Shown here: positions 4,215 to 53,022 of the stretch, piece by piece
Layout: each line of letters starts with the position of its first letter
Numbering within the stretch: position 1 is the stretch's first letter
Sequence record: KY555144.1
Length of the DNA: 64,000 nucleotides
Strand: one strand, 5' to 3'
The notes under the pieces: generated by a model
Told to the model about the DNA's origin: nothing
The model's input: only the letters and a program-made list of their open reading frames with translations
The model's database searches: none
Program-made: the position numbers and the translations under genes

Positions 4215-5258
4215 ATGACCTCTCATGCCATGGTCGCGCACCGTTGGGCGCAGGACGACGAGAACGGCCGCACCGCGCGCGGCTTCAACATGTATTTCGA
4301 GCGCTACGGGCGCGGCGCCGACCGCGTCAACGTGATTTTCTCCTACGGGACTCACTTCCCGGCCGCCGCCTTCGTGACCGACGCGCACGGCCGCCGCGTC
4401 GCTCTGGTCACCACGCGGACTCGGAGCATTTCGACCGCTAAGCACATGTCGCACATTCGCCGGGCGATCCGTGGCCCTTATTTCAACGTCCCGGACGTGT
4501 CGCGGATGCACAAGCCGGGCGGCGCGGGCGACTTCCACGGGGACAACCTGCGCGCCTATATCGAGAGCGCCGCCGGCCTCGCCGCCAAGGCCAAGCGCGC
4601 CCGCGTCAACGGCCCTTGGCTGCTTTCGCAGGCCCGCGACGTGCTCGCCGAAGCCCAACGCTACGCCGACGCCTTCAAGCTGAAAACCAAGGTTCCGCCC
4701 TTGGAAGACGTCGCCGGCGCATGGGCGAAGATGACGGCCGCCAAGGCGCGGGCCGAAGCCAAGGCCCGCAAGGAGGCCGAAAAGCGCGCCCGCGAGGCCC
4801 GCGAAGCCGAACGCCTCGCCGACGCCGAAGCCTTCGCCGGGTGGATGCGCGGCGAGCGCCAGAGCGCCCCGTTTAGCTACCGGGTGCGCGATGACGGGAC
4901 CGTCTATCTTCGCCGCTTCCGGGGCGTGGTCCGCGACCTGCGCAGCCAAGAGCGCGACGGCTCGCGCGTCGATGAACTGCAAACCTCGCAAGGCGCGGCC
5001 GTGCCGTGGGAACACGCGGTCAAGGCCTTCCGGTTCATCAAGCTTTGCCGCGAACGCGGCGAGGGCTTCCACCGTAACGGCCGGGTGATTCGCGTCGGTC
5101 ACTTCCAAGTCGATTCGATCGCCCCCAATGGCGACATGGTCGCCGGGTGTCACCGGTTCGCGTGGGATGAAATCGAACGCCTCGCCAGGGCCGAAGGGGT
5201 TTTCGACCTCCCCGCCGCCGCCGACGCCGTCGAAACCCGGCAAGCCGAACCGGCCTAA
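4215..5258 (+). CDS. Hypothetical early protein with coiled-coil segment
   Basis: ATG 4215 after AAGGA; strong codon bias. Confidence 0.8.
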   Translation: MTSHAMVAHRWAQDDENGRTARGFNMYFERYGRGADRVNVIFSYGTHFPAAAFVTDAHGRRVALVTTRTRSISTAKHMSHIRRAIRGPYFNVPDVSRMHKPGGAGDFHGDNLRAYIESAAGLAAKAKRARVNGPWLLSQARDVLAEAQRYADAFKLKTKVPPLEDVAGAWAKMTAAKARAEAKARKEAEKRAREAREAERLADAEAFAGWMRGERQSAPFSYRVRDDGTVYLRRFRGVVRDLRSQERDGSRVDELQTSQGAAVPWEHAVKAFRFIKLCRERGEGFHRNGRVIRVGHFQVDSIAPNGDMVAGCHRFAWDEIERLARAEGVFDLPAAADAVETRQAEPA

Positions 5259-6279: not shown

Positions 6280-6702
6280 ATGCGAACCACGAAAGCCCAA
6301 CGCTTCGCCGCCGTCGCCTTTGACGCCCTGGCCAAGGCCCTAAGCGAAGAGCCCCGCCGCGTCGTCTCCCGCGTGACCAAATGGGAGGGGGCGGGCCATA
6401 GCTTCGCCAACCTGCAACGCGATTATGAGCGTTACGGCCCCGGCCGCCGCTCATGGTTCGGCCGCGACGAAATGCGGTTCTTTGGGACGCGCCTAGAGGC
6501 CGCCCCGCTGGACTTTCCCGCCCTTCGCGTCACCCTCTTTCTGACCTCCGAAACCCCGCCCGGCGCCGGCCGGGTCTGGACCCTTCGCGCCTATCTCTGG
6601 GACTCGGCCGATATCGAGACTTTGACGCGCGGCGACGAAACCGACGCGGCGACCGCGCAAGCCGCCTTTGACCTGCTTTGGCCGATCCTTTCCGGCCGGT
6701 AA
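6280..6702 (+). CDS. Hypothetical protein
   Basis: GGAGG RBS. Confidence 0.75.
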   Translation: MRTTKAQRFAAVAFDALAKALSEEPRRVVSRVTKWEGAGHSFANLQRDYERYGPGRRSWFGRDEMRFFGTRLEAAPLDFPALRVTLFLTSETPPGAGRVWTLRAYLWDSADIETLTRGDETDAATAQAAFDLLWPILSGR

Positions 6703-46531: not shown

Positions 46532-47308
46532 ATGGCGATCCAGAACCCCCATTCCACCACGCCCGGCGCCATGCCGCACCTGACGCCCGGCGAGATCGGC
46601 GTCAACAAGGCCGACGACATCCTCTGGTTCCGCTCGCAGGGGCGCCGCGTGCCGATCATCCTGAGCGACCTTGACCGCGCCCCGCCGGCGGACGGCTATG
46701 TCGGCGCGCCCCTGACCCTGGTGGACGGCGCGCCGGCCTGGAACGTCAAGCTCTTGCCGTCCTCGATCGTCTCCGGCGCGGTCAAGGTCGATCTCCCGCC
46801 CGCCGCCGGGCTACACGCCGTGCCGAGCGTCCTGCTCCAGGGCCTGGGGGCCGATCGCGCCCTGGCGTCCAATGATCTGGACCTCACCCCCTTCTATGTC
46901 CGCTCCGACTCCATCACCCTGACCCATCTGGCCTTCAGCGTGCGCTCGGCGGGCGCGCCGGCCATGCGCGTGGGGATCGTCGATGCCTTCGGCGTCGTCC
47001 AGGCCGACATCCTGGTCGCCGCGCCGGTCGTGGGGGCCAATGTCGTGGCTCTCTCGCCGGTCCTGACCCTCCAGCGCGGCGTCTACCGCACCATCCTGGC
47101 GACGACCGGGGCGGTGACCGTGGGGATCGCCACGGGCGCGCGCATGGAGCAGGGCTGGGACATCATCGCCGACGCGCCGTCGTTCATCCGGGGCTACAGC
47201 GGCAGCAAGAACACCGGCGGCGGTATCGGGAGCCTACCGGCGCTGACCCCGCGCCGCGACCCCGCGCCGGGCCAGGATCACGCCGTCCTCCTGCGCTGGA
47301 CGGCGTGA
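46532..47308 (+). CDS. Fibre-associated protein
   Basis: N-terminal STTPGAMPHLTPGEIGVN motif; C-domain resembles end of the giant fibre. Confidence 0.75.
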   Translation: MAIQNPHSTTPGAMPHLTPGEIGVNKADDILWFRSQGRRVPIILSDLDRAPPADGYVGAPLTLVDGAPAWNVKLLPSSIVSGAVKVDLPPAAGLHAVPSVLLQGLGADRALASNDLDLTPFYVRSDSITLTHLAFSVRSAGAPAMRVGIVDAFGVVQADILVAAPVVGANVVALSPVLTLQRGVYRTILATTGAVTVGIATGARMEQGWDIIADAPSFIRGYSGSKNTGGGIGSLPALTPRRDPAPGQDHAVLLRWTA

Positions 47309-47340
47309 ATCTTGACACTCGGTCGAAATACGGTTAACCT
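47302..47340 (+). promoter_or_regulatory. GGCGTGAATC-TTGACA-N15-GTTAACCT promoter
   Basis: Motif variant. Confidence 0.7.
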
Positions 47341-47370
47341 GCGCGCTCATCTGGAGTTTCGAGCGCCATC

Positions 47371-47637
47371 ATGGCCGAGCTTGTCCGCATCTATCACCCC
47401 GAGACGAACGAGCCGTTCGACGTGATTCCGTCGACCGCTGAACGTCTGCGCCTGGGTCAAGGTCTGGACGGTCTGGTGTGGCTCTCGCAGCCCTTCTCCC
47501 GCGCCGCTGCCGAAGAGCCGGCGCCGGAAGCCCCCAAGGGGCGAGGTCGTAAGCGCGTCGCCGCGCCCGTCTCGGACGAAGCCGAAGACGATGGCTGGCG
47601 TGACGCGCCGACCGAGGACGCTTCCGAAGCCGCGTAA
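47371..47637 (+). CDS. Acidic protein with KGRGRKR motif
   Basis: GGAG RBS; resembles the 33233 gene. Confidence 0.75.
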   Translation: MAELVRIYHPETNEPFDVIPSTAERLRLGQGLDGLVWLSQPFSRAAAEEPAPEAPKGRGRKRVAAPVSDEAEDDGWRDAPTEDASEAA

Positions 47638-47681
47638 GGCGCTTCCCCGTCCACTCTGCTGAAATTCGGTCTCAGTCCCAT

Positions 47682-47757
47682 GTCGGTCTAGCTCATGGGG
47701 TAGAGCGGCGGTCTCCAAAACCGCGCGTGGCAGGTTCGAGTCCTGCGACCGGCGCCA
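47682..47757 (+). tRNA. tRNA-Trp(CCA)
   Basis: Cloverleaf; loop CT-CCA-AA; encoded CCA. Confidence 0.95.
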
Positions 47758-47762
47758 TTTCC

Positions 47763-47837
47763 GCGTCCATCGTATATGGGTTATTGCTTCGCGTTGCCAA
47801 CGCGACGAACCGGGTTCGAGTCCCGGTGGACGCTCCA
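47763..47837 (+). tRNA. tRNA-Gly(GCC)
   Basis: Loop TT-GCC-AA; U73; CCA. Confidence 0.95.
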
Positions 47838-47843
47838 ATCCAG

Positions 47844-47917
47844 GCGGATATAGCTCAAAGGGAGAGCTACTGCCTTCCAAGCAGAAGATGCGGGTTCGAG
47901 CCCCGCTATCCGCTCCA
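47844..47917 (+). tRNA. tRNA-Gly(TCC)
   Basis: Loop CT-TCC-AA; U73; CCA. Confidence 0.95.
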
Positions 47918-47938
47918 AAATTTTCTTCCACGACAAGC

Positions 47939-47967
47939 TTGACAGCCGTCGAGATTTGTGAGAGCCT
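47939..47967 (+). promoter_or_regulatory. Promoter of Glu/Asp tRNA unit
   Basis: TTGACA-N15-GAGAGCCT; twin of the 48735 promoter. Confidence 0.75.
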
Positions 47968-47976
47968 TCAACCATT

Positions 47977-48039
47977 ATGACGCACCTCCTGACCCGTTAC
48001 GAACGCGAGGCCACCGGCCTCGATACCACCACCGCCTAA
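47977..48039 (+). CDS. Putative leader peptide MTHLLTRYEREATGLDTTTA
   Basis: Near-leaderless ORF between promoter and tRNA-Glu/Asp; alternative hairpins. Confidence 0.5.
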   Translation: MTHLLTRYEREATGLDTTTA

Positions 48040-48073
48040 AAGCGGTTCTGGTAACCGAGGCCTTTTGTCATGT

Positions 48074-48151
48074 GGCCCGGTCGTCTAGCGGTTTGCAGGA
48101 TTCGTGACTTTCAATCACGAGAGCGGAGTTCGAGTCTCCGTCGGGCCTCCA
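48074..48151 (+). tRNA. tRNA-Glu(TTC)
   Basis: Loop CT-TTC-AA; CCA. Confidence 0.92.
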
Positions 48152-48174
48152 CCCCCAAAGCCTCCTCTGAGCTT

Positions 48175-48249
48175 GGTGCGTTCGTATATCGGTCAATACT
48201 CCGGATTGTCGATCCGGCAAGAGGGGTTCGATTCCCCTACGCACCGCCA
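48175..48249 (+). tRNA. tRNA-Asp(GTC)
   Basis: Loop TT-GTC-GA; G73; CCA. Confidence 0.95.
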
Positions 48250-48259
48250 GGGCTTTTCC

Positions 48260-48418
48260 ATGCCGCTCCAGTCGGGTTCGAGCGACGCCGTCGTCTCGCA
48301 CAACATCGCCAAGCTGATCGACGAGGGCTACTCCAGGGAGCAGGCCGTGGCGATCGCCCTCTCCCAGGCGCGCAAGCCGCGCCGTCCGAAGGTCTCGCGC
48401 GGCTCGCGCCGGCGCTGA
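48260..48418 (+). CDS. Small basic phage protein
   Basis: MPL..G.S...NI..L..EGY...QAVAIAL pattern; Arg-rich tail. Confidence 0.75.
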
Positions 48419-48489
48419 CCTCGCCTCGCTAAAGCACCCCCAGGTTCCCGGCCTCGTCGTGAGGCCGCCTGCGGTCGCGCGAGGCTTCC

Positions 48490-48714
48490 ATGACCTTTCT
48501 TGATCTTCGTTCGCAGTCGAGCGCCGTGCTCCTGCGCCATGTGTCTTCCCGATCCCCGATGGCGGAAGCGGCTCGCACCGAGTTGCTGACCCGAGGCCTC
48601 GTTCCGCTCCTCACGCGGCACAACGGCTGGCGCCTCGCCCCGAGCGAGCCCTTTCCGCAGCATCTCATCCCGCGCCCCGATCCGCTCGCGAGGTTCACGT
48701 GGCGGGCGGGATGA
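48490..48714 (+). CDS. Hypothetical protein
   Basis: GAGG RBS. Confidence 0.55.
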   Translation: MTFLDLRSQSSAVLLRHVSSRSPMAEAARTELLTRGLVPLLTRHNGWRLAPSEPFPQHLIPRPDPLARFTWRAG

Positions 48715-48734
48715 AGATTTTTCTCACGACGTGC

Positions 48735-48763
48735 TTGACATTCGTTTGAAGTTGTGAGAGCCT
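48735..48763 (+). promoter_or_regulatory. Promoter of Pro/Thr/Lys/Leu/His/Ala/Ser tRNA operon
   Basis: TTGACA-N15-GAGAGCCT. Confidence 0.8.
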
Positions 48764-48857
48764 ACCCAACGTCACGGATCACGACACTCCTCGGAGTGCA
48801 AAAGCGCGATCCTTCGTTATTCCCTGGACGCCAGCGGGCGTCCGTTCGAGAGCCATC

Positions 48858-48995
48858 ATGTTCGCCTTGTCGCATTACAGCCTGAGCACGAAAGCCGCCT
48901 CCCCGGCGTCGCTTTCGCTTGCCCTGCTGGCGACGGCCACGAAGCCCTCGACCAAGCCGACCACCTCGGCCTCGCACTCGACGGATCACCTCTAG
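48858..48995 (+). CDS. Putative attenuator leader peptide (45 aa; 41 residues are S/A/T/L/K/P/H)
   Basis: MFALSHYSLSTKAASPASLSLALLATATKPSTKPTTSASHSTDHL; composition equals downstream tRNA set. Confidence 0.8.
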   Translation: MFALSHYSLSTKAASPASLSLALLATATKPSTKPTTSASHSTDHL

Positions 48996-49071
48996 GGTAT
49001 CTCGTCTCGGGTGCGGGCCTTGGAGCCGCACCCGCTACCAACATCCTGTTGACCTAGCGCAAGGCGGCTCC
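48968..49071 (+). promoter_or_regulatory. Alternative helices of attenuator (A:B, B:C, C:D)
   Basis: 48968-81 pairs with 49007-19; 49008-16 with 49026-34; 49022-29 with 49064-71. Confidence 0.75.
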
Positions 49072-49097
49072 CAGCAAGGAGACCGCCTTTTCTTTTT
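49061..49097 (+). terminator. Attenuator intrinsic terminator
   Basis: AAGGCGGCTCC-CAGCAA-GGAG(A)CCGCCTT then TTCTTTTT, 13 nt before first tRNA. Confidence 0.85.
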
Positions 49098-49109
49098 CGC
49101 GTTGATCAT

Positions 49110-49185
49110 CGGGGTGTAGCTCAGTCGGTAGAGCGCTCGGTTCGGGACCGAGAGGCCGTGGGTTCGAGTCCCGCCACCCAGACCA
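49110..49185 (+). tRNA. tRNA-Pro(CGG)
   Basis: Loop TT-CGG-GA; C1-G72, A73. Confidence 0.93.
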
Positions 49186-49192
49186 ACGCCAT

Positions 49193-49267
49193 CGGGATGT
49201 AGCTCAGCGGTAGAGCGCGCGGCTGGGGGCCGCGAGGCCGCAGGTTCGAGACCTGCCACCCCGACCA
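49193..49267 (+). tRNA. tRNA-Pro(GGG)
   Basis: Loop CT-GGG-GG; C1-G72, A73. Confidence 0.92.
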
Positions 49268-49272
49268 ACAAT

Positions 49273-49345
49273 GCTGCTGCGCCTGGATCGGCGCCGGCCC
49301 CTTGGTATGGGGAAGTAGAAGGTTCAATTCCTTCCGGCAGCACCA
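49273..49345 (+). tRNA. tRNA-Thr(GGT)
   Basis: CCCC/GGGG stem, loop TT-GGT-AT; G1-C72, C2-G71. Confidence 0.75.
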
Positions 49346-49350
49346 ACAAT

Positions 49351-49420
49351 GCCGATGCCTCTAGGAGGACACGTCTTTCGTAATGACGTCAGGTGGGTGC
49401 GATCCCCACTTTCGGCTCCA
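49351..49420 (+). tRNA. tRNA-Thr(CGT), non-canonical
   Basis: Loop TT-CGT-AA with T.T closing pair; T-loop TGCGATC; short D-arm. Confidence 0.6.
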
Positions 49421-49455
49421 TCAAGATGATCAAGGAGAGATCAGACGAAACAAAT

Positions 49456-49542
49456 GGATGTGTCACCTCAGTGGCGAGAGGACCGGGCTCTTAATCCGGC
49501 AGCGAAAGCTCATCGTGGGTTCGAGTCCCACCACATCCTCCA
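49456..49542 (+). tRNA. tRNA-Lys(CTT) with long variable arm
   Basis: Loop CT-CTT-AA; 87 nt; U73. Confidence 0.85.
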
Positions 49543-49547
49543 ATAAT

Positions 49548-49637
49548 GCACGAGTGACCCGAGCGGCGAAGGGCGTCGACTTTTAATCGACTGGGCGTCC
49601 AGCCTCACCGAGGGTTCGAGTCCCTCCTCGTGCTCCA
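49548..49637 (+). tRNA. tRNA-Lys(TTT) with long variable arm
   Basis: Loop CT-TTT-AA; 90 nt; U73. Confidence 0.85.
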
Positions 49638-49643
49638 AGATGT

Positions 49644-49729
49644 GCGAAAGTGGCGGAACAAGGTAGACGCACCGGTCTCAGGTACCGGCGGCTTCGGTCA
49701 TGAGGGTTCGAGTCCCTCCTTTCGTACCA
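49644..49729 (+). tRNA. tRNA-Leu(CAG)
   Basis: Class II; loop CT-CAG-GT; A73. Confidence 0.95.
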
Positions 49730-49736
49730 ACGACAT

Positions 49737-49821
49737 GCCGGTCTGGCGGAAATGGCAGACGCAGTGGCTTCAAGTCCCACCGCCTTCGGGCGTCCCGGTT
49801 CGATGCCGGGGACCGGCACCA
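49737..49821 (+). tRNA. tRNA-Leu(CAA)
   Basis: Class II; loop TT-CAA-GT; A73. Confidence 0.9.
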
Positions 49822-49827
49822 CCATGA

Positions 49828-49915
49828 TGCGAAGTGGCGGAATTTGGTAGACGCACCGGCATGAGAGGCCGGCGCCCTTCGGGGCGTGAGGGTTCGAGTC
49901 CCTTCTTCGCGACCA
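49828..49915 (+). tRNA. tRNA-Leu(GAG)
   Basis: Class II; loop AT-GAG-AG; A73. Confidence 0.92.
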
Positions 49916-49928
49916 AAGACGAGATCAT

Positions 49929-50000
49929 GCCGGCCGGCGCAGGCGCGCGGGGGAGGTTGTGTCCCTCCTTGGCTCAGTTCGATACTGAGGGTCGGTTCCA
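49929..50000 (+). tRNA. tRNA-His(GTG)-like, non-canonical
   Basis: GCCGGCC/GGTCGGT acceptor (G1.U72); GGAGG/CCTCC stem with TT-GTG-TC loop; TTCGATA T-loop; CCA. Confidence 0.6.
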
Positions 50001-50005
50001 GTTAC

Positions 50006-50076
50006 GGGGTATGCGCAGGGCGCAGGCATCCTTTGCAAGGAAGTCGGGGTGGGTTCGAGTCCCACATACTCCACCA
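50006..50076 (+). tRNA. tRNA-Ala(TGC)
   Basis: G3.U70; loop TT-TGC-AA; A73. Confidence 0.88.
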
Positions 50077-50080
50077 ACAC

Positions 50081-50168
50081 GGTAGGTTGGCTGAGAGGCC
50101 GAAGGCGCCCGTTTCGAAAACGGGAGAACTGCAAGGTTCCGTGGGTTCGAATCCCACACCTACCTCCA
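50081..50168 (+). tRNA. tRNA-Ser(CGA)
   Basis: Class II; loop TT-CGA-AA. Confidence 0.93.
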
Positions 50169-50172
50169 ACAT

Positions 50173-50260
50173 GGATGTATGGCTGAGAGGCCGAAGGCGC
50201 CCGCTTGGAAAGCGGGTGAACCGCAAGGTTCCGTAGGTTCGAATCCTACTACATCCGCCA
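50173..50260 (+). tRNA. tRNA-Ser(GGA)
   Basis: Class II; loop TT-GGA-AA; G73. Confidence 0.95.
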
Positions 50261-50264
50261 ACAG

Positions 50265-50351
50265 GGTAGGTGGTTCCGGCCTGGGGCCGGACCCGGTTGC
50301 TAACCGGCCGGAGCCGCAAGGCTTGGGGTTCGATTCCTCCTCCTACCGCCA
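50265..50351 (+). tRNA. tRNA-Ser(GCT)
   Basis: Class II; loop TT-GCT-AA; G73. Confidence 0.88.
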
Positions 50352-50359
50352 CTTCGATG

Positions 50360-50616
50360 TTGACACCCGCGACGCGGCCTGTCATACGTCACGACAGAGC
50401 GAACACCCCCCGGCCGGGTTTGTTGTCATACCGGGTCGTCACGCCCCGTCGGGGCTCTAGTAGCTCTTCGTGTGGAGTTTTCCGCCTCCCTCCCAGACAA
50501 GGAGGCGGACCCAACCAACATCGCGATCTCCCGTGATCGTCGGCGACGGGCGCCGTCAGAGACCTTTGCCTGCGCGGCTCCGCTGCGGCCTCGGTCTCGT
50601 CCCGACCAAATTTTTT
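50360..50616 (+). ncRNA. Candidate structured ncRNA with own promoter
   Basis: TTGACA-N15-GTCATACG; multiple hairpins; no credible ORF; ends in T-run. Confidence 0.4.
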
Positions 50617-50627
50617 CGTCGTGGTGC

Positions 50628-50656
50628 TTGACACTGCGAAACTGTTCTGCTAGGGT
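50628..50656 (+). promoter_or_regulatory. Promoter of Tyr/Phe/Val/Ile/Gln/Asn/Arg tRNA operon
   Basis: TTGACA-N15-GCTAGGGT. Confidence 0.85.
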
Positions 50657-50663
50657 TCACGTC

Positions 50664-50762
50664 ATGAGCAAGACCTATCGTCAATTTGTGCGCCAGATTC
50701 AGGTCGTCCGGAATATCCGGGCGGGCCGCTCGCGCATGGCTGACGAAGGGTTCAGGGACTAG
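50664..50762 (+). CDS. Putative attenuator leader peptide (32 aa)
   Basis: MSKT-YRQFVRQIQVVRNIR-AGRSRMADEGFRD; 15 consecutive residues drawn only from downstream tRNA specificities. Confidence 0.82.
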   Translation: MSKTYRQFVRQIQVVRNIRAGRSRMADEGFRD

Positions 50763-50792
50763 GTCCCGCACCACGCTCAACCAGCTTTCGAG

Positions 50793-50830
50793 AGGCCCGC
50801 CTGGAAACCCCAGGCGGGCCTTTTTCTTTT
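50793..50830 (+). terminator. Attenuator intrinsic terminator
   Basis: AGGCCCGCCTGG-AAACC-CCAGGCGGGCCT then TTTTCTTTT; 5' arm can instead pair with 50720-50732. Confidence 0.9.
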
Positions 50831-50865
50831 CCCCCTTTCGATCACGGAGATCGCCAAACAGACAC

Positions 50866-50950
50866 GGATGCTTAAAGCTGGAGGGCTCCAGCCGGGGACT
50901 GTAAATCCCCTCTCTTCGGAGGAGTGGTTCGATCCCACAAGCATCCACCA
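50866..50950 (+). tRNA. tRNA-Tyr(GTA)
   Basis: Class II; loop CT-GTA-AA; A73. Confidence 0.9.
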
Positions 50951-50955
50951 ACCAC

Positions 50956-51031
50956 GGACTCGTAGCTCAGCAGGTAGAGCGCCGGCTTGAAACCCCGGAG
51001 GTCGGAGGTTCGATTCCTCCCGTTTCCACCA
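50956..51031 (+). tRNA. tRNA-Phe(GAA)
   Basis: Loop TT-GAA-AC. Confidence 0.92.
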
Positions 51032-51036
51032 ACAAC

Positions 51037-51112
51037 GCCCGATGAGCCAGATGGGAAGGCGCCGCCGTGACATGGCGGGATTGAGAAGGTTCGATTCCTT
51101 CATCAGGCACCA
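51037..51112 (+). tRNA. tRNA-Val(GAC)
   Basis: Loop GT-GAC-AT; A73. Confidence 0.9.
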
Positions 51113-51114
51113 AT

Positions 51115-51190
51115 GCAAGTGTAGCTCAGTCGGTAGAGCAGCGGACCGATAATCCGCCCGTCCCTGGTTCGAGTCCAGGCATTTGCACCA
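51115..51190 (+). tRNA. tRNA-Ile(GAT), C33 variant
   Basis: Loop CC-GAT-AA; A73. Confidence 0.85.
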
Positions 51191-51197
51191 ATTCTGA

Positions 51198-51272
51198 TGT
51201 GGCATAGCTCAGGGGTAGAGCGCGCGCTTGATAAGCGTGAGGTCGGGGGTTCGAAGCCCTCTGCCACTACCA
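51198..51272 (+). tRNA. tRNA-Ile(GAT)
   Basis: Loop TT-GAT-AA; A73. Confidence 0.9.
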
Positions 51273-51305
51273 GTTTCCAGGCCGGCGGAGATGCGCCGGA
51301 CCTGA

Positions 51306-51381
51306 TGGCGTTTAGCATAGTGGGAGTGCAGGGGTGTCACATACCTCGATCGAACTGGTTCGATTCCAGTAACGCCAACCA
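51306..51381 (+). tRNA. tRNA-Val(CAC)
   Basis: Loop GT-CAC-AT; A73. Confidence 0.88.
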
Positions 51382-51386
51382 AACGT

Positions 51387-51460
51387 TGAGGGTTCGTCTA
51401 ATGGTAGGACGGCTGGGTCTGGTCCAGCTAATCTAGGTTCGAGTCCTAGCCCCTCATCCA
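51387..51460 (+). tRNA. tRNA-Gln(CTG)
   Basis: Loop GT-CTG-GT. Confidence 0.9.
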
Positions 51461-51467
51461 AGTTTGT

Positions 51468-51541
51468 TCTCGGGTGGTCTAATGGTAAGACATCTGGTTT
51501 TGGTCCAGAGGATTGGGGTTCGATTCCTTGGCCGAGAACCA
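51468..51541 (+). tRNA. tRNA-Gln(TTG)
   Basis: Loop TT-TTG-GT. Confidence 0.9.
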
Positions 51542-51556
51542 ACTATTTGAGTTTAT

Positions 51557-51631
51557 TCCAGTCAATGCACAAGGTGTGCAGCGGCACTGTTAATGCCTGT
51601 GAGCCCGGTTCGATTCCGGGGTCTGGAGCCA
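51557..51631 (+). tRNA. tRNA-Asn(GTT)
   Basis: Loop CT-GTT-AA; G73. Confidence 0.9.
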
Positions 51632-51657
51632 ACACGTCGGCCTCGGCCGGCACATGC

Positions 51658-51740
51658 GCCCTGGTAACCGAGGGGGATTACGAATCCCTTAGTCGTAGCA
51701 GGAGTTGAAAAGGGTGGTTCGAATCCACTCCAGGGTGCCA
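51658..51740 (+). tRNA. tRNA-Arg(ACG)-like, lacking a normal D-arm
   Basis: Acceptor, anticodon (TT-ACG-AA) and T arms intact; about 8 nt in place of D-arm, about 23-nt variable region. Confidence 0.6.
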
Positions 51741-51747
51741 AATTCAT

Positions 51748-51830
51748 AGCGCGCAGGCCGAGCAGGATCATCGTCAGGCGTCGCCCTCCGAAGGCGAAGA
51801 GGCCCGGTTCGAGTCCGGGGCGCGCTGCCA
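51748..51830 (+). tRNA. tRNA-Arg(CCG) with enlarged D-loop
   Basis: Loop CT-CCG-AA; D-loop about 17 nt. Confidence 0.8.
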
Positions 51831-51833
51831 TCC

Positions 51834-51911
51834 GCGCGGGTAGCTCAATGGACCCAGAGCAGCCGTCTTCTACACGGTGGGTTGGGGGTTCGAATCCCTC
51901 CCCGTGCGCCA
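51834..51911 (+). tRNA. tRNA-Arg(TCT)
   Basis: Loop CT-TCT-AC; CCA. Confidence 0.92.
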
Positions 51912-51914
51912 AAC

Positions 51915-52232
51915 TTGACGGGCGATGCCGAATCGCTCAGCTTCCTGATCGGCTCTCGATGGGCCGCCACTGCACGCCACCGACGCCCTCCCGGTACAAG
52001 GAGGGGCGCACGTCGGCGACGTTCCAACCCAGTTCCGGACGATCTTCGAACGCGGCCTGCCGTGGAGGGGTGCTGGAAGGGCCGGGGTTGTGGGAACCGT
52101 CGAGCATCTCCTACATCCGGATTGGGCTTCCTGGGGGCTCCTCCGGTCAACCAGGGCCTGACCCGACCCCGGAGATGCGCCGCCTACGATCACCCAGGAC
52201 CGTCCTGGCGGTGGAAAGGGTCTGAAATTTTT
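51915..52232 (+). ncRNA. Candidate ~310-nt structured ncRNA after last tRNA
   Basis: Long-range stems such as GCATCTCC/GGAGATGC; no codon-biased ORF. Confidence 0.4.
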
Positions 52233-52246
52233 CTGGCGCTGATGTG

Positions 52247-52378
52247 TTGACACTCCTCGGAGGTTCGTCTAAAACCAGCAGCGTCAGAGCGGCGTTGGAC
52301 CACGAGGTCCGCCGCGAGCTTCTGCGTTGTCGTCAGGAACGGCCCGTCAGCAATCCCGCTGGCGGGTCGTTTCGTTTT
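52247..52378 (+). ncRNA. Candidate sRNA (promoter, hairpin, terminator)
   Basis: TTGACA-N15-TCTAAAAC; hairpin 52281-52327; terminator 52341-52378. Confidence 0.5.
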
Positions 52379-52414
52379 GGGCGCGATGCGACGTTCAGTC
52401 CAACCATGGGTAGT

Positions 52415-52453
52415 GTCATGAATCTTGACTTTCGGCGCTTATTCCGGTAGCTT
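52415..52453 (+). promoter_or_regulatory. GTCATGAATC-TTGACT-N15-GGTAGCTT promoter
   Basis: Motif variant. Confidence 0.7.
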
Positions 52454-52498
52454 TCCCGACATCAGCAAACGCTCACAAGTCGGGGACCGAGAGCCGTC

Positions 52499-52915
52499 AT
52501 GTCGCAAGACCACCACGGCTCGTCCTCGGGCCAAGAACGCATCTACCAGAAACTGGATGAGCTTGGCTCCATGCACGCGCGCACCCGTGAAGATATTGCC
52601 CGCATCCAGGAGATGATGCGAGCGGTCGGTTCGTCGCAGGAGCGAATCGAAAAGCGTCAGGACCATTTCGAGCGCGAAATCTGGCGCGAGATGGAAGATC
52701 GCGCCGCGCGCACGAGCGCCCAACTCGACGAAATCAAGAGCCACACCAACCTGCGCATCGAGGAGATCGAGGCCAAGGTCGACACGATCCGCGAGGAGCG
52801 GATCGCCGAAAAGGCCCAGTGGCGCGGCCCCGAGAAGGCCATCGCCGCCCTGGTCGCCGTCGCCGGGGCCATCGCCGCCTTCGCCACCATCCTCACTTTC
52901 CTGAAGGGACACTAG
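52499..52915 (+). CDS. Coiled-coil protein with C-terminal TM anchor
   Basis: Heptad-rich body; IAALVAVAGAIAAFATILTFL tail (XhlA/holin-like topology). Confidence 0.75.
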   Translation: MSQDHHGSSSGQERIYQKLDELGSMHARTREDIARIQEMMRAVGSSQERIEKRQDHFEREIWREMEDRAARTSAQLDEIKSHTNLRIEEIEAKVDTIREERIAEKAQWRGPEKAIAALVAVAGAIAAFATILTFLKGH

Positions 52916-52950
52916 GACTTATAGTCAAGCTTGGGTGCCTGCGGCCAGAA

Positions 52951-52966
52951 GTCGCGCTTCTTGACA
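52951..52966 (+). promoter_or_regulatory. GTCGCGCTTC-TTGACA promoter (degenerate, no GANTC)
   Basis: Motif variant. Confidence 0.5.
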
Positions 52967-53022
52967 CCCGATCTGGGCCGGCATAACCATAGGGCCATCA
53001 TTCCTGGGTGGAGTTTTCCCTA

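Follow-up and report, generated by a model that had tools for sequence, protein, structure and literature searches.

The first 64,000 nucleotides (nt) of the genome of Ccr5 (KY555144.1; 100% identity, identical coordinates), a phiCbK-like Caulobacter phage of the Dolichocephalovirinae, were analysed as one window, with a focus on the tRNA genes around positions 47,939-51,911. The window holds 31 tRNA or tRNA-like genes, 28 of which lie in three units named U1, U2 and U3. In each unit a TTGACA hexamer is followed by a short open reading frame (ORF), a hairpin and then the tRNA genes (Table 1), the first of which begins 5-30 nt past the hairpin and its T-tract. The two large units share no amino acid: the 14 tRNAs of U2 serve P, T, K, L, H, A and S, and the 12 tRNAs of U3 serve Y, F, V, I, Q, N and R. 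The short ORFs in front of them are written largely in codons of the tRNAs that follow. Our results suggested that each large tRNA block is probably an operon under the control of a ribosome-mediated attenuator, whose control codons are the codons of its own tRNAs. The remaining block, U0, is the sole one without its own leader and hairpin; it was kept as context, outside the attenuator set.

Table 1. Features of the tRNA region of Ccr5, in positions of the 64,000-nt window
Feature	Position	Strand	Remarks
U0	47311..47917	+	CTTGACA promoter at 47311-47317; gp078 ORF at 47371-47637; tRNA-Trp(CCA), Gly(GCC), Gly(UCC)
U1 -35 hexamer TTGACA	47939..47944	+	ATG 32 nt downstream; mRNA predicted to be leaderless or nearly so
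U1 leader ORF MTHLLTRYEREATGLDTTTA	47977..48039	+	20 amino acids; conserved Glu codons at 48001 and 48007; Asp codon at 48022
U1 long hairpin	48016..48068	+	5' arm GGCCTCG at 48016-48022, in the ORF; 3' arm at 48056-48062; TTTTGT tract; terminator in the phiCbK annotation
U1 tRNAs	48074..48249	+	Glu(UUC), Asp(GUC)
U2 -35 hexamer TTGACA	48735..48740	+	5' untranslated region; gap of 117 nt from -35 to ATG
U2 leader ORF (gp081)	48858..48995	+	45 amino acids; annotated as hypothetical protein
U2 region 0 (GGCCTCGCACTCG)	48968..48980	+	Inside the 3' end of the ORF; predicted to pair with region 1
U2 region 1 (CGGGTGCGGGCC)	49008..49019	+	Predicted to pair with region 0 or region 2
U2 region 2 (GGAGCCGCACCCG)	49022..49034	+	Predicted to pair with region 1 or, as antiterminator, with the terminator 5' arm
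U2 intrinsic terminator, predicted (AAGGCGGCTCC / GGAGACCGCCTT)	49061..49098	+	Stem and T-tract TTTTCTTTTT; ends about 10 nt before tRNA-Pro
U2 tRNAs	49110..50352	+	Pro CGG, Pro GGG, Thr GGT, Thr CGT, Lys CTT, Lys TTT, Leu CAG, Leu CAA, Leu GAG, His GTG, Ala TGC, Ser CGA, Ser GGA, Ser GCT
U3 -35 hexamer TTGACA	50628..50633	+	ATG exactly 30 nt downstream
U3 leader ORF MSKTYRQFVRQIQVVRNIRAGRSRMADEGFRD	50664..50762	+	32 amino acids; control run YRQFVRQIQVVRNIR at 50676-50720
U3 region 1 (TCGTCCGGA)	50704..50712	+	Predicted anti-antiterminator 5' arm, inside the control codons; apex of a long hairpin at 50672-50752
U3 region 2 (TCCGGGCGGGCC G CTCG)	50716..50732	+	Predicted to pair with region 1 or region 3; TCCGGGCGGGCC is 50716-50727
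U3 small hairpin	50755..50767	+	Stop codon TAG at 50760-50762 in the loop
U3 intrinsic terminator, predicted	50790..50834	+	15-bp stem of region 3 (50790-50804) and region 4 (50810-50824), then T-tract
U3 tRNAs	50866..51911	+	Tyr GTA, Phe GAA, Val GAC, Ile GAT (two), Val CAC, Gln CTG, Gln TTG, Asn GTT, Arg ACG, Arg CCG, Arg TCT
Atypical tRNA genes	49273-49423, 49928-50000, 50866-50950, 51557-51830	+	Missed or, for Asn, mis-called by default ARAGORN; no match to the Rfam tRNA model

ARAGORN with default settings detected 24 tRNAs and Rfam about 23. A relaxed ARAGORN threshold gave extra genes for Thr(GGT), His(GTG), Ser(GCT) and two Arg, and inspection by eye yielded two more, Tyr(GTA) (50866-50950) and Thr(CGT) (49351-49420). 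The ARAGORN call Ile(aat) at 51557-51631 was re-read as Asn(GTT), and Arg(cct) at 51657-51740 was re-read as Arg(ACG). Most of the added or corrected tRNAs have a cloverleaf fold and a CCA end and align to tRNAs annotated in relatives. Seven atypical genes (two for Thr, and those for His, Tyr, Asn, Arg ACG and Arg CCG) were missed, or in the case of Asn mis-called, by default ARAGORN, and the Rfam tRNA model did not match any of them. Since such genes escape default tools, the published tRNA counts for these phages are too low; in the phiCbK genome paper (Gill et al. 2012, PMC3556154) Thr and Tyr are listed as having no tRNA, and His and Asn tRNAs have also been reported as missing from these phages. 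The length of the two tRNA-Lys genes (87-90 nt, within 49456-49637) suggests a long extra arm, which would be unusual for Lys.

The codon content of the leaders was then scored against the anticodons found, using standard wobble rules. In leader 2, 41 of 44 residues belong to its own set, 35 of the 44 codons are cognate to U2 tRNAs and all 14 anticodons are covered; codons 2-33, the first 32 after the ATG, already represent the complete set of 14 tRNAs. Leader 3 has 19 of 31 residues in its own set, including an uninterrupted run of 15 residues. All codons of this core (15/15) are cognate to U3 tRNAs and cover 10 of 11 anticodons, and the full leader covers 11 of 11. When scored against the other unit, the leaders reached just 2/44 (leader 2) and 5/31 (leader 3). 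Leader 1 carries conserved E-x-E and D positions, so that three of its codons correspond to the Glu and Asp tRNAs of U1. As expected of attenuators, the control codons thus correspond to what the operons supply.

The match was compared with the rest of the window. In the six-frame translation, the longest run of U2-set residues is in leader 2 (35 residues; the next best is 20), and the longest run of U3-set residues is in leader 3 (15 residues; the next best, poly-Arg, is 9). The observed cognate count and anticodon coverage were jointly reached only by the leaders among 61,722 and 96,087 stop-free six-frame windows. Among windows taken from real genes the frequencies were at most 4e-4, except that the cognate count of leader 3 over all its 31 codons gave 1.2e-3. 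The core of leader 3 is also rich in rare codons ending in A or U (6/15; in genes, such codons account for 12.7% of those used for these amino acids; P=0.0075). Classical attenuators gain sensitivity through rare control codons.

A sequence-only reading of this stretch had placed 28 of the 31 tRNAs in three units, each opened by TTGACA, and had given the two large units non-overlapping amino acid sets. The hexamers are present at 47939, 48735 and 50628, the three-unit layout was confirmed by ARAGORN (default and relaxed), Rfam and inspection, and the partition was confirmed by the anticodon assignments. Two further claims stood in part. Enrichment of each leader in its own set is true for leaders 2 and 3 but does not extend to leader 1, in which 3 of 19 codons are for Glu or Asp. 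A stem-loop with a T-tract before the first tRNA is strong in U3 (stem at 50790-50824) and clear in U2, but is weaker in U1.

All three leader ORFs are short, have a usable start directly behind the promoter and precede the genes to be regulated. The TTGACA hexamers were taken as promoters because of their strand bias and fixed spacing. The plus strand of the window has 13 copies of CTTGACA and the minus strand has none. A gap of exactly 30 nt separates the -35 hexamer from the ATG in 11/11 U3 leaders, and one of 29-33 nt in U1, of the relatives described below; with U3-type and C-type leaders taken together, the gap is again exactly 30 nt in 16/16. This fixed spacing of 30 nt would place the AUG at, or adjoining, the transcription start and points to a leaderless U3 mRNA. 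Leaderless mRNAs are common in Caulobacter. A scan with the sigma-70 consensus, which needs a TATAAT-like -10 element, returned no promoters. The degenerate motif YTTGACR occurs 55 times in the window versus about 21 expected, and seven YTTGACG copies are clustered at 1775-1932.

A candidate fourth module was observed at 52246-52380, upstream of gp082 and PhoH. It has GTTGACA followed by about 100 nt without an ATG at the leaderless position, and ends in a hairpin and T-tract (CCCGCTGGCGGG, TCGTTTCGTTTT), for which the phiCbK annotation gives a terminator. The module could encode a small RNA or act as an attenuator of a different type.

To follow the leaders through evolution, the corresponding regions of phiCbK, Rogue, BL10, BL57, Colossus, CcrPW and RB23 and of the Brevundimonas phages Gurke, Domovoi and Bajun were compared. 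The three leaders are kept as ORFs in at least nine lineages (Ccr5/phiCbK, Rogue/BL10, BL57, Colossus, CcrPW, RB23, Gurke, Domovoi and Bajun), and the tRNA units are alike. Substitutions in the U3 leader stay within the set (F/N, R/Q, V/R and I/F/N/Y), and insertions and deletions are in frame. The own-set fraction of the U2 and U3 leaders in these phages is 0.53-0.95, versus 0-0.23 for the sets of other units; over the twelve phages scored, the other-unit fraction is 0-0.33. Exchanges that remain in the set while joining chemically unlike residues are unlike the evolution of a functional peptide, and fit a design in which any codon of an operon tRNA would suffice.

One tRNA differs between close relatives. 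The last tRNA of U3 (51834-51911) is Arg(UCU) in Ccr5 and Gly(UCC) in phiCbK (6306-6383 of the fetched sequence), through a single change of an anticodon base. A parallel difference in leader 3, AGG in Ccr5 (50754) versus CGG in phiCbK, was given no weight, because it lies outside the sensing window defined below and is not repeated in Rogue or BL57.

The correspondence was also found where the tRNAs are grouped differently. The Erythrobacter phages XM05 and vB_EliS-L02 and the Sphingobium phage Lacusarx have other tRNA groupings, and their leaders follow them (KGDERF; SYLTHQCW; PMVIAN). The leaders MTYGFTKRDRREGDERGFTS, MTFGRTKRDRREGDERGFTS and ..MFTRFGKRDRREGERGFSL stand ahead of Lys Lys Gly Gly Asp Glu Glu Arg Arg Phe, the leaders MFTQTALHLLTQTPLYCQWQYSCSSL and MFTQTTLLTQCHYWQLLSSSSL ahead of Ser (Tyr) Leu Leu Thr His Gln Ser Cys Trp, and the leader MFNVIAMNNPAPAIMVPVAMACVEGTRD ahead of Pro Pro Met Val Ile Ala Asn. 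For MFTQTALHLLTQTPLYCQWQYSCSSL the complete tRNA series is Ser Tyr Leu3 Thr His Gln2 Ser Cys Trp. Identical pairings of leader and tRNA group were found in environmental IMG/VR contigs. In the sensing parts of the leaders, the rare residues Trp, Cys and Met are confined to units that carry the corresponding tRNAs; outside those parts, the exceptions are a few in non-sensing U3 tails, two U1 leaders and leader A of XM05, whose unit has no Met tRNA called. Consistently, RB23 has gained a tRNA-Trp at the end of U2, and TGG is found in the U2 leader of RB23 alone. AAA occurs in the U2 leader exactly where U2 has tRNA-Lys(UUU), that is in the Ccr5 and Rogue groups, Gurke and Domovoi, and is missing where Lys(CUU) is the only Lys tRNA, in Colossus, CcrPW, Bajun and RB23. 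At the level of sequence comparison, these natural experiments (the regrouped sets, Trp in RB23 and AAA with Lys(UUU)) are the decisive evidence for the correspondence between leader and tRNAs.

The tracking has limits. No clean relation was seen for TCA and Ser(UGA) or for CCA and Pro(UGG), because wobble lets other codons serve those tRNAs. Unit A of Lacusarx has no clear leader, and a scan of IMG/VR with the pattern of U3 region 2 and terminator recovered known isolates only. In the Ruegeria phage RpAliso, a more distant CbK-like phage, the tRNAs are scattered among protein genes and no matching leader ORFs were recognised (its RPALISO_29 resembles a small membrane protein), which indicates that the design is not universal among prolate-headed alphaproteobacterial phages. 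A 'Gly(acc)' tRNA considered against the Gly codon in environmental C-type leaders was discarded; the gene is Leu(UAA), mis-called by ARAGORN, and a TTA codon is present there.

Some resemblances between leaders of different units were observed as well. The tail of the A leader of XM05 and L02 (..ARVGDGGTAF; in XM05 the leader lies at 4678-4773 of the joined sequence) resembles U3 tails (..RMDDGGTFI, ..MGDGGTQI), and the B leader MTYGFTKRDRRE.. resembles U1 leaders MTYRLTSYEREA.. From their sequences, the leader families seem to share an origin, their control codons having been rewritten when tRNAs changed units. A palindrome, GTTCCCGATCGGGATC, is found paired in Bajun and RB23 in the slot that tRNA-Lys(UUU) occupies elsewhere, and also inside the tRNA array of XM05 (fetched sequences L011 7921-7986, L021 9383-9448, L017 3-18 and L018 79-144, all outside the window). 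The palindrome may mark where tRNA genes were replaced by a small mobile element or a nuclease site.

The RNA between the start codon and the first tRNA was examined for alternative structures. In U3, TCCGGGCGGGCC nearly copies the 3' arm of the terminator and can therefore pair with region 3, the 5' arm. When the transcript is truncated before the 3' arm, it is predicted to fold into an antiterminator of 12(+4) bp in every lineage. The full transcript is predicted to fold into a 9-bp hairpin of regions 1 and 2 (1:2), the small stop-codon hairpin and the terminator. The helices 1:2, 2:3 and 3:4 are mutually exclusive, and in the nine-lineage alignment they are 92.6%, 89.6% and 94.8% paired, with 3-4 pairs in each helix changed on both sides. 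In controls, slid helices were 27-69% paired and 0-1 of 500 shuffles reached the observed scores, a statistic that overstates independence since the lineages are related. Compensatory changes are evident in Colossus, where region 2 has G->U, region 3 U->A and region 4 A->U. In Bajun a G-C pair between regions 2 and 3 has become A-U, which keeps the pairing and changes the peptide from Ala to Thr. The conserved 'AGRS' of the U3 leader is encoded by region 2, and is a nucleotide feature rather than a peptide feature.

To estimate the positions at which a stalled ribosome would favour the antiterminator, folding was confined to the RNA that lies 3' of the ribosome (A site plus 13 nt), and the cost of keeping region 3 unpaired was computed. 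In eight lineages the modelled cost is about 10-32 kcal/mol for U3 A-site codons 2 to about 16, and mostly 2-6 kcal/mol (up to about 10) beyond. Own-set residues make up 104/123 positions inside this structure-derived window versus 40/119 outside (Fisher 2e-16, a descriptive value given the related lineages). The end of this window at about codon 16 also explains why the bias is absent from the U3 tail (M, D, E, G, C and others). In an earlier masking model, in which base pairs could span the ribosome, the antiterminator won at every position at equilibrium.

U2 is predicted to reach a similar outcome with one more region. Pairing of regions 0 and 1 would leave region 2 free for the terminator 5' arm, and a ribosome on the stop codon would allow the 1:2 hairpin and the terminator, as is also modelled for Gurke, Domovoi and Bajun. 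The helix set 0:1, 1:2, 2:3 and 3:4 is predicted in four lineage groups. The calculated drive towards antitermination is 16-18 kcal/mol for stalls at codons 2-35, where 14/14 tRNAs are represented, and about half of that afterwards. Both large units have, by prediction, an antiterminator exclusive of the terminator and an upstream helix that overlaps the control codons. They also have a predicted intrinsic terminator between leader and genes, with a 15-bp stem and T-run in U3. The phiCbK annotation carries terminators in front of the tRNA clusters (PMC3556154).

In U1 the stop codon TAA (48037-48039) lies in the apical loop of the long hairpin, and a ribosome held at the second Glu or the Asp codon would melt the base of the hairpin. 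A direct-occlusion variant of the switch is plausible for U1, which is the least secure unit. A stop codon in a hairpin loop is found in all three Ccr5 leaders (48037-48039, 48993-48995 and 50760-50762), and also in U1 and U3 of the relatives.

Based on these features, the following mechanism is proposed. Host RNA polymerase would start at the TTGACA-type promoter, in U3 and U1 at or adjoining the AUG so that the mRNA is leaderless, and a ribosome would translate the leader. If a tRNA of the set is scarce or uncharged, the ribosome would stall in the sensing window. In U3 the stall would free region 2 for the terminator 5' arm; in U2 it would let region 0 hold region 1, so that region 2 pairs with the terminator 5' arm. 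With the terminator blocked, the tRNA genes would be transcribed. If decoding is fast, the ribosome would reach the stop codon, the local 1:2 hairpin would re-form behind or ahead of it, the terminator would form and transcription would end before the first tRNA. As the hairpin lies between the promoter and the first tRNA, the tRNAs would be made only by read-through. The net effect would be a negative feedback that fits the output of phage tRNAs to the decoding demand. We infer that tRNA synthesis occurs, most likely, only when decoding slows, and candidate triggers are the loss of host tRNAs, anticodon nucleases, the demand of late genes and starvation.

The sequence-only reading had also proposed attenuation, and had looked to the conservation of the leaders as ORFs and to leader composition following tRNA gain and loss. 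The leaders are conserved in at least nine lineages with substitutions inside the unit set, and their composition follows the regrouped sets of the Erythrobacter and Sphingobium phages, the Trp of RB23 and Lys(UUU)/AAA. Together with the U3 helices with compensatory changes and the position of the sensing window on own-set codons, these results support the proposal.

Several points weigh against this interpretation. The evidence is computational throughout, and translation, termination and regulation are predicted. The antiterminator is calculated to be favoured at equilibrium even when no ribosome is present (U3, 7-19 kcal/mol; U2, 14 kcal/mol); the 'off' state would thus depend on kinetics, presumably with the 1:2 hairpin taking priority, and by thermodynamics untranslated U2 and U3 transcripts may also read through. 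U1 has just 3/19 own-set codons (two Glu and one Asp) and no enrichment in composition, its hairpin has weak T-tracts and makes a weak terminator candidate, and no separate antiterminator and anti-antiterminator set was found in this unit. U2 of Colossus and CcrPW lacks a clear T-tract terminator, and the C-type units of XM05 and Lacusarx have a conserved hairpin after the stop codon without a T-tract. Leader 2 has six GCC codons for Ala, of which tRNA-Ala(UGC) is not a strict cognate, and the seven atypical tRNAs are non-canonical and may not all function. A published RNA-seq time course of phiCbK infection (PMC10688885) does not discuss the tRNA region.

The stop codons in hairpin loops raise the question of whether the leaders gauge the coupling of translation to transcription. 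In such a system a ribosome that keeps pace with RNA polymerase would block the hairpin, so that good decoding leads to read-through and poor decoding to termination, as a positive feedback or a licence for translating cells. The geometry of U1 suits this idea, since the 5' arm of its hairpin is in the ORF, the stop codon is in the loop, and a ribosome on the last ~10 codons must melt the hairpin; in C-type units the hairpin begins 1-2 nt past the stop codon. However, the terminators of U3 and U2 lie 28 nt and 65 nt past the stop codon, beyond the reach of a terminating ribosome, and conserved antiterminators are found there. The own-set codons sit where a stall would free the antiterminator and not where the ribosome would cover the terminator, and a positive feedback on tRNA supply has no obvious use. 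We therefore consider this explanation unlikely, though the best placed of the alternatives.

Slightly less likely still is the possibility that the leaders do sense decoding of their own set but act through RNase processing, stability of the tRNA precursor or Rho-dependent termination, with the hairpins as processing or stability elements. The poor T-tracts of U1 in most lineages, of U2 in Colossus and CcrPW and of the C units in XM05 and Lacusarx would be explained in this way, as would the short distance (5-30 nt) from the hairpins to the tRNA 5' ends. The canonical G+C-rich stems and T-runs with a matching antiterminator, present in U3 of 9/9 lineages and in U2 of the Ccr5, Gurke, Domovoi and Bajun groups, argue for termination as the output. 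That the leaders are chance ORFs or ordinary small proteins whose composition comes from G+C-rich low-complexity sequence is very improbable: stop-free stretches are common in DNA of 67% G+C, gp081 is annotated as a hypothetical protein and the tRNA arrays of RpAliso have no recognisable leaders, but the leaders are unique among ~60,000-96,000 six-frame windows, show a unit-specific partition rather than a general bias, re-form the match with other tRNA groupings including the rare Trp, Cys and Met, keep a fixed distance between promoter and ATG, and exchange chemically unlike residues as proteins do not.

With attenuation by the unit's own codons as the preferred reading, a wider statement can be made about the phages. 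On balance we lean towards the view that CbK-like phages autoregulate their tRNA operons by multi-codon sensors of the availability of their own tRNAs, which sense tRNAs rather than amino acids. Output would rise exactly when host tRNAs run low, are cut by anticodon nucleases or cannot keep up with the demand of late genes, and the leaders would co-evolve codon by codon as tRNAs are gained, lost and shuffled.

The elements resemble several known systems. Enterobacterial leaders such as those of ilvGMEDA (Leu/Val/Ile codons) and thr (Thr/Ile codons), as well as trpL, hisL, leuL and pheL, likewise have a promoter-proximal short ORF, control codons, a terminator, and an exclusive antiterminator and anti-antiterminator, and a stall selects the antiterminator; U3 reproduces the four-region layout of the trp attenuator. 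They differ in that the genes controlled here are tRNAs and not biosynthetic enzymes, that the elements are phage-encoded, and that the U3 and U1 mRNAs are predicted to be leaderless; the phage elements are not related to them in sequence. Enterobacterial attenuators also sense 1-3 amino acids, whereas here 6-8 amino acids and 11-14 tRNA species would be sensed, usually with one or a few codons per tRNA. The pheM leader, which regulates the pheST operon for phenylalanyl-tRNA synthetase by attenuation, is comparable in that the target of its leader peptide, too, belongs to the decoding machinery and not to a pathway of biosynthesis. It answers to one amino acid and controls a synthetase, whereas here the sensed tRNA would itself be the product of the operon, a direct autoregulation. 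The T-box riboswitch binds one uncharged tRNA directly and without a ribosome; it shares the sensing of tRNA state and the switching between terminator and antiterminator. In contrast, the codons here are part of an in-frame ORF with conserved start and stop, and the fixed start implies sensing by a ribosome. An Rfam cmscan of 47000-53000 (E<=1) gave tRNA matches and weak chance matches only, with no leader family and no T-box.

In mycobacteria, leaderless polycysteine short ORFs are reported to act as cysteine-responsive attenuators (bioRxiv 10.1101/834739). As described there, they share with the phage leaders a leaderless short ORF at a polycistronic 5' end, with codons of the commodity regulated, and differ in having a single amino acid, chromosomal genes of cysteine metabolism and another downstream mechanism. 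Gill et al. (2012, PMC3556154) treated the tRNA clusters of phiCbK-like phages as codon-usage supplements, and leaders or attenuation are not mentioned there. In searches of open-access text we found no description of attenuator-controlled tRNA operons or of these leaders, an absence that is not proof. What is new here is the target class, tRNA operons, and the unusually broad sensor.

The design of a leader plus a tRNA block is seen in phages of four bacterial genera (Caulobacter, Brevundimonas, Erythrobacter and Sphingobium). It bears on the questions of why large phages carry tRNA genes and how these genes are expressed, for the genome itself names the tRNAs that would be monitored. The composition of a leader predicts tRNA genes that standard tools miss, and provides a rule for locating similar elements in other phages. 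The leaders would also offer small natural reporters of how well chosen codons can be decoded. If the interpretation is true, leader-peptide attenuation would cover the tRNA pool as well as amino acid biosynthesis, a single sensor would monitor 6-8 amino acids instead of 1-3, and viruses as well as cells would use it.

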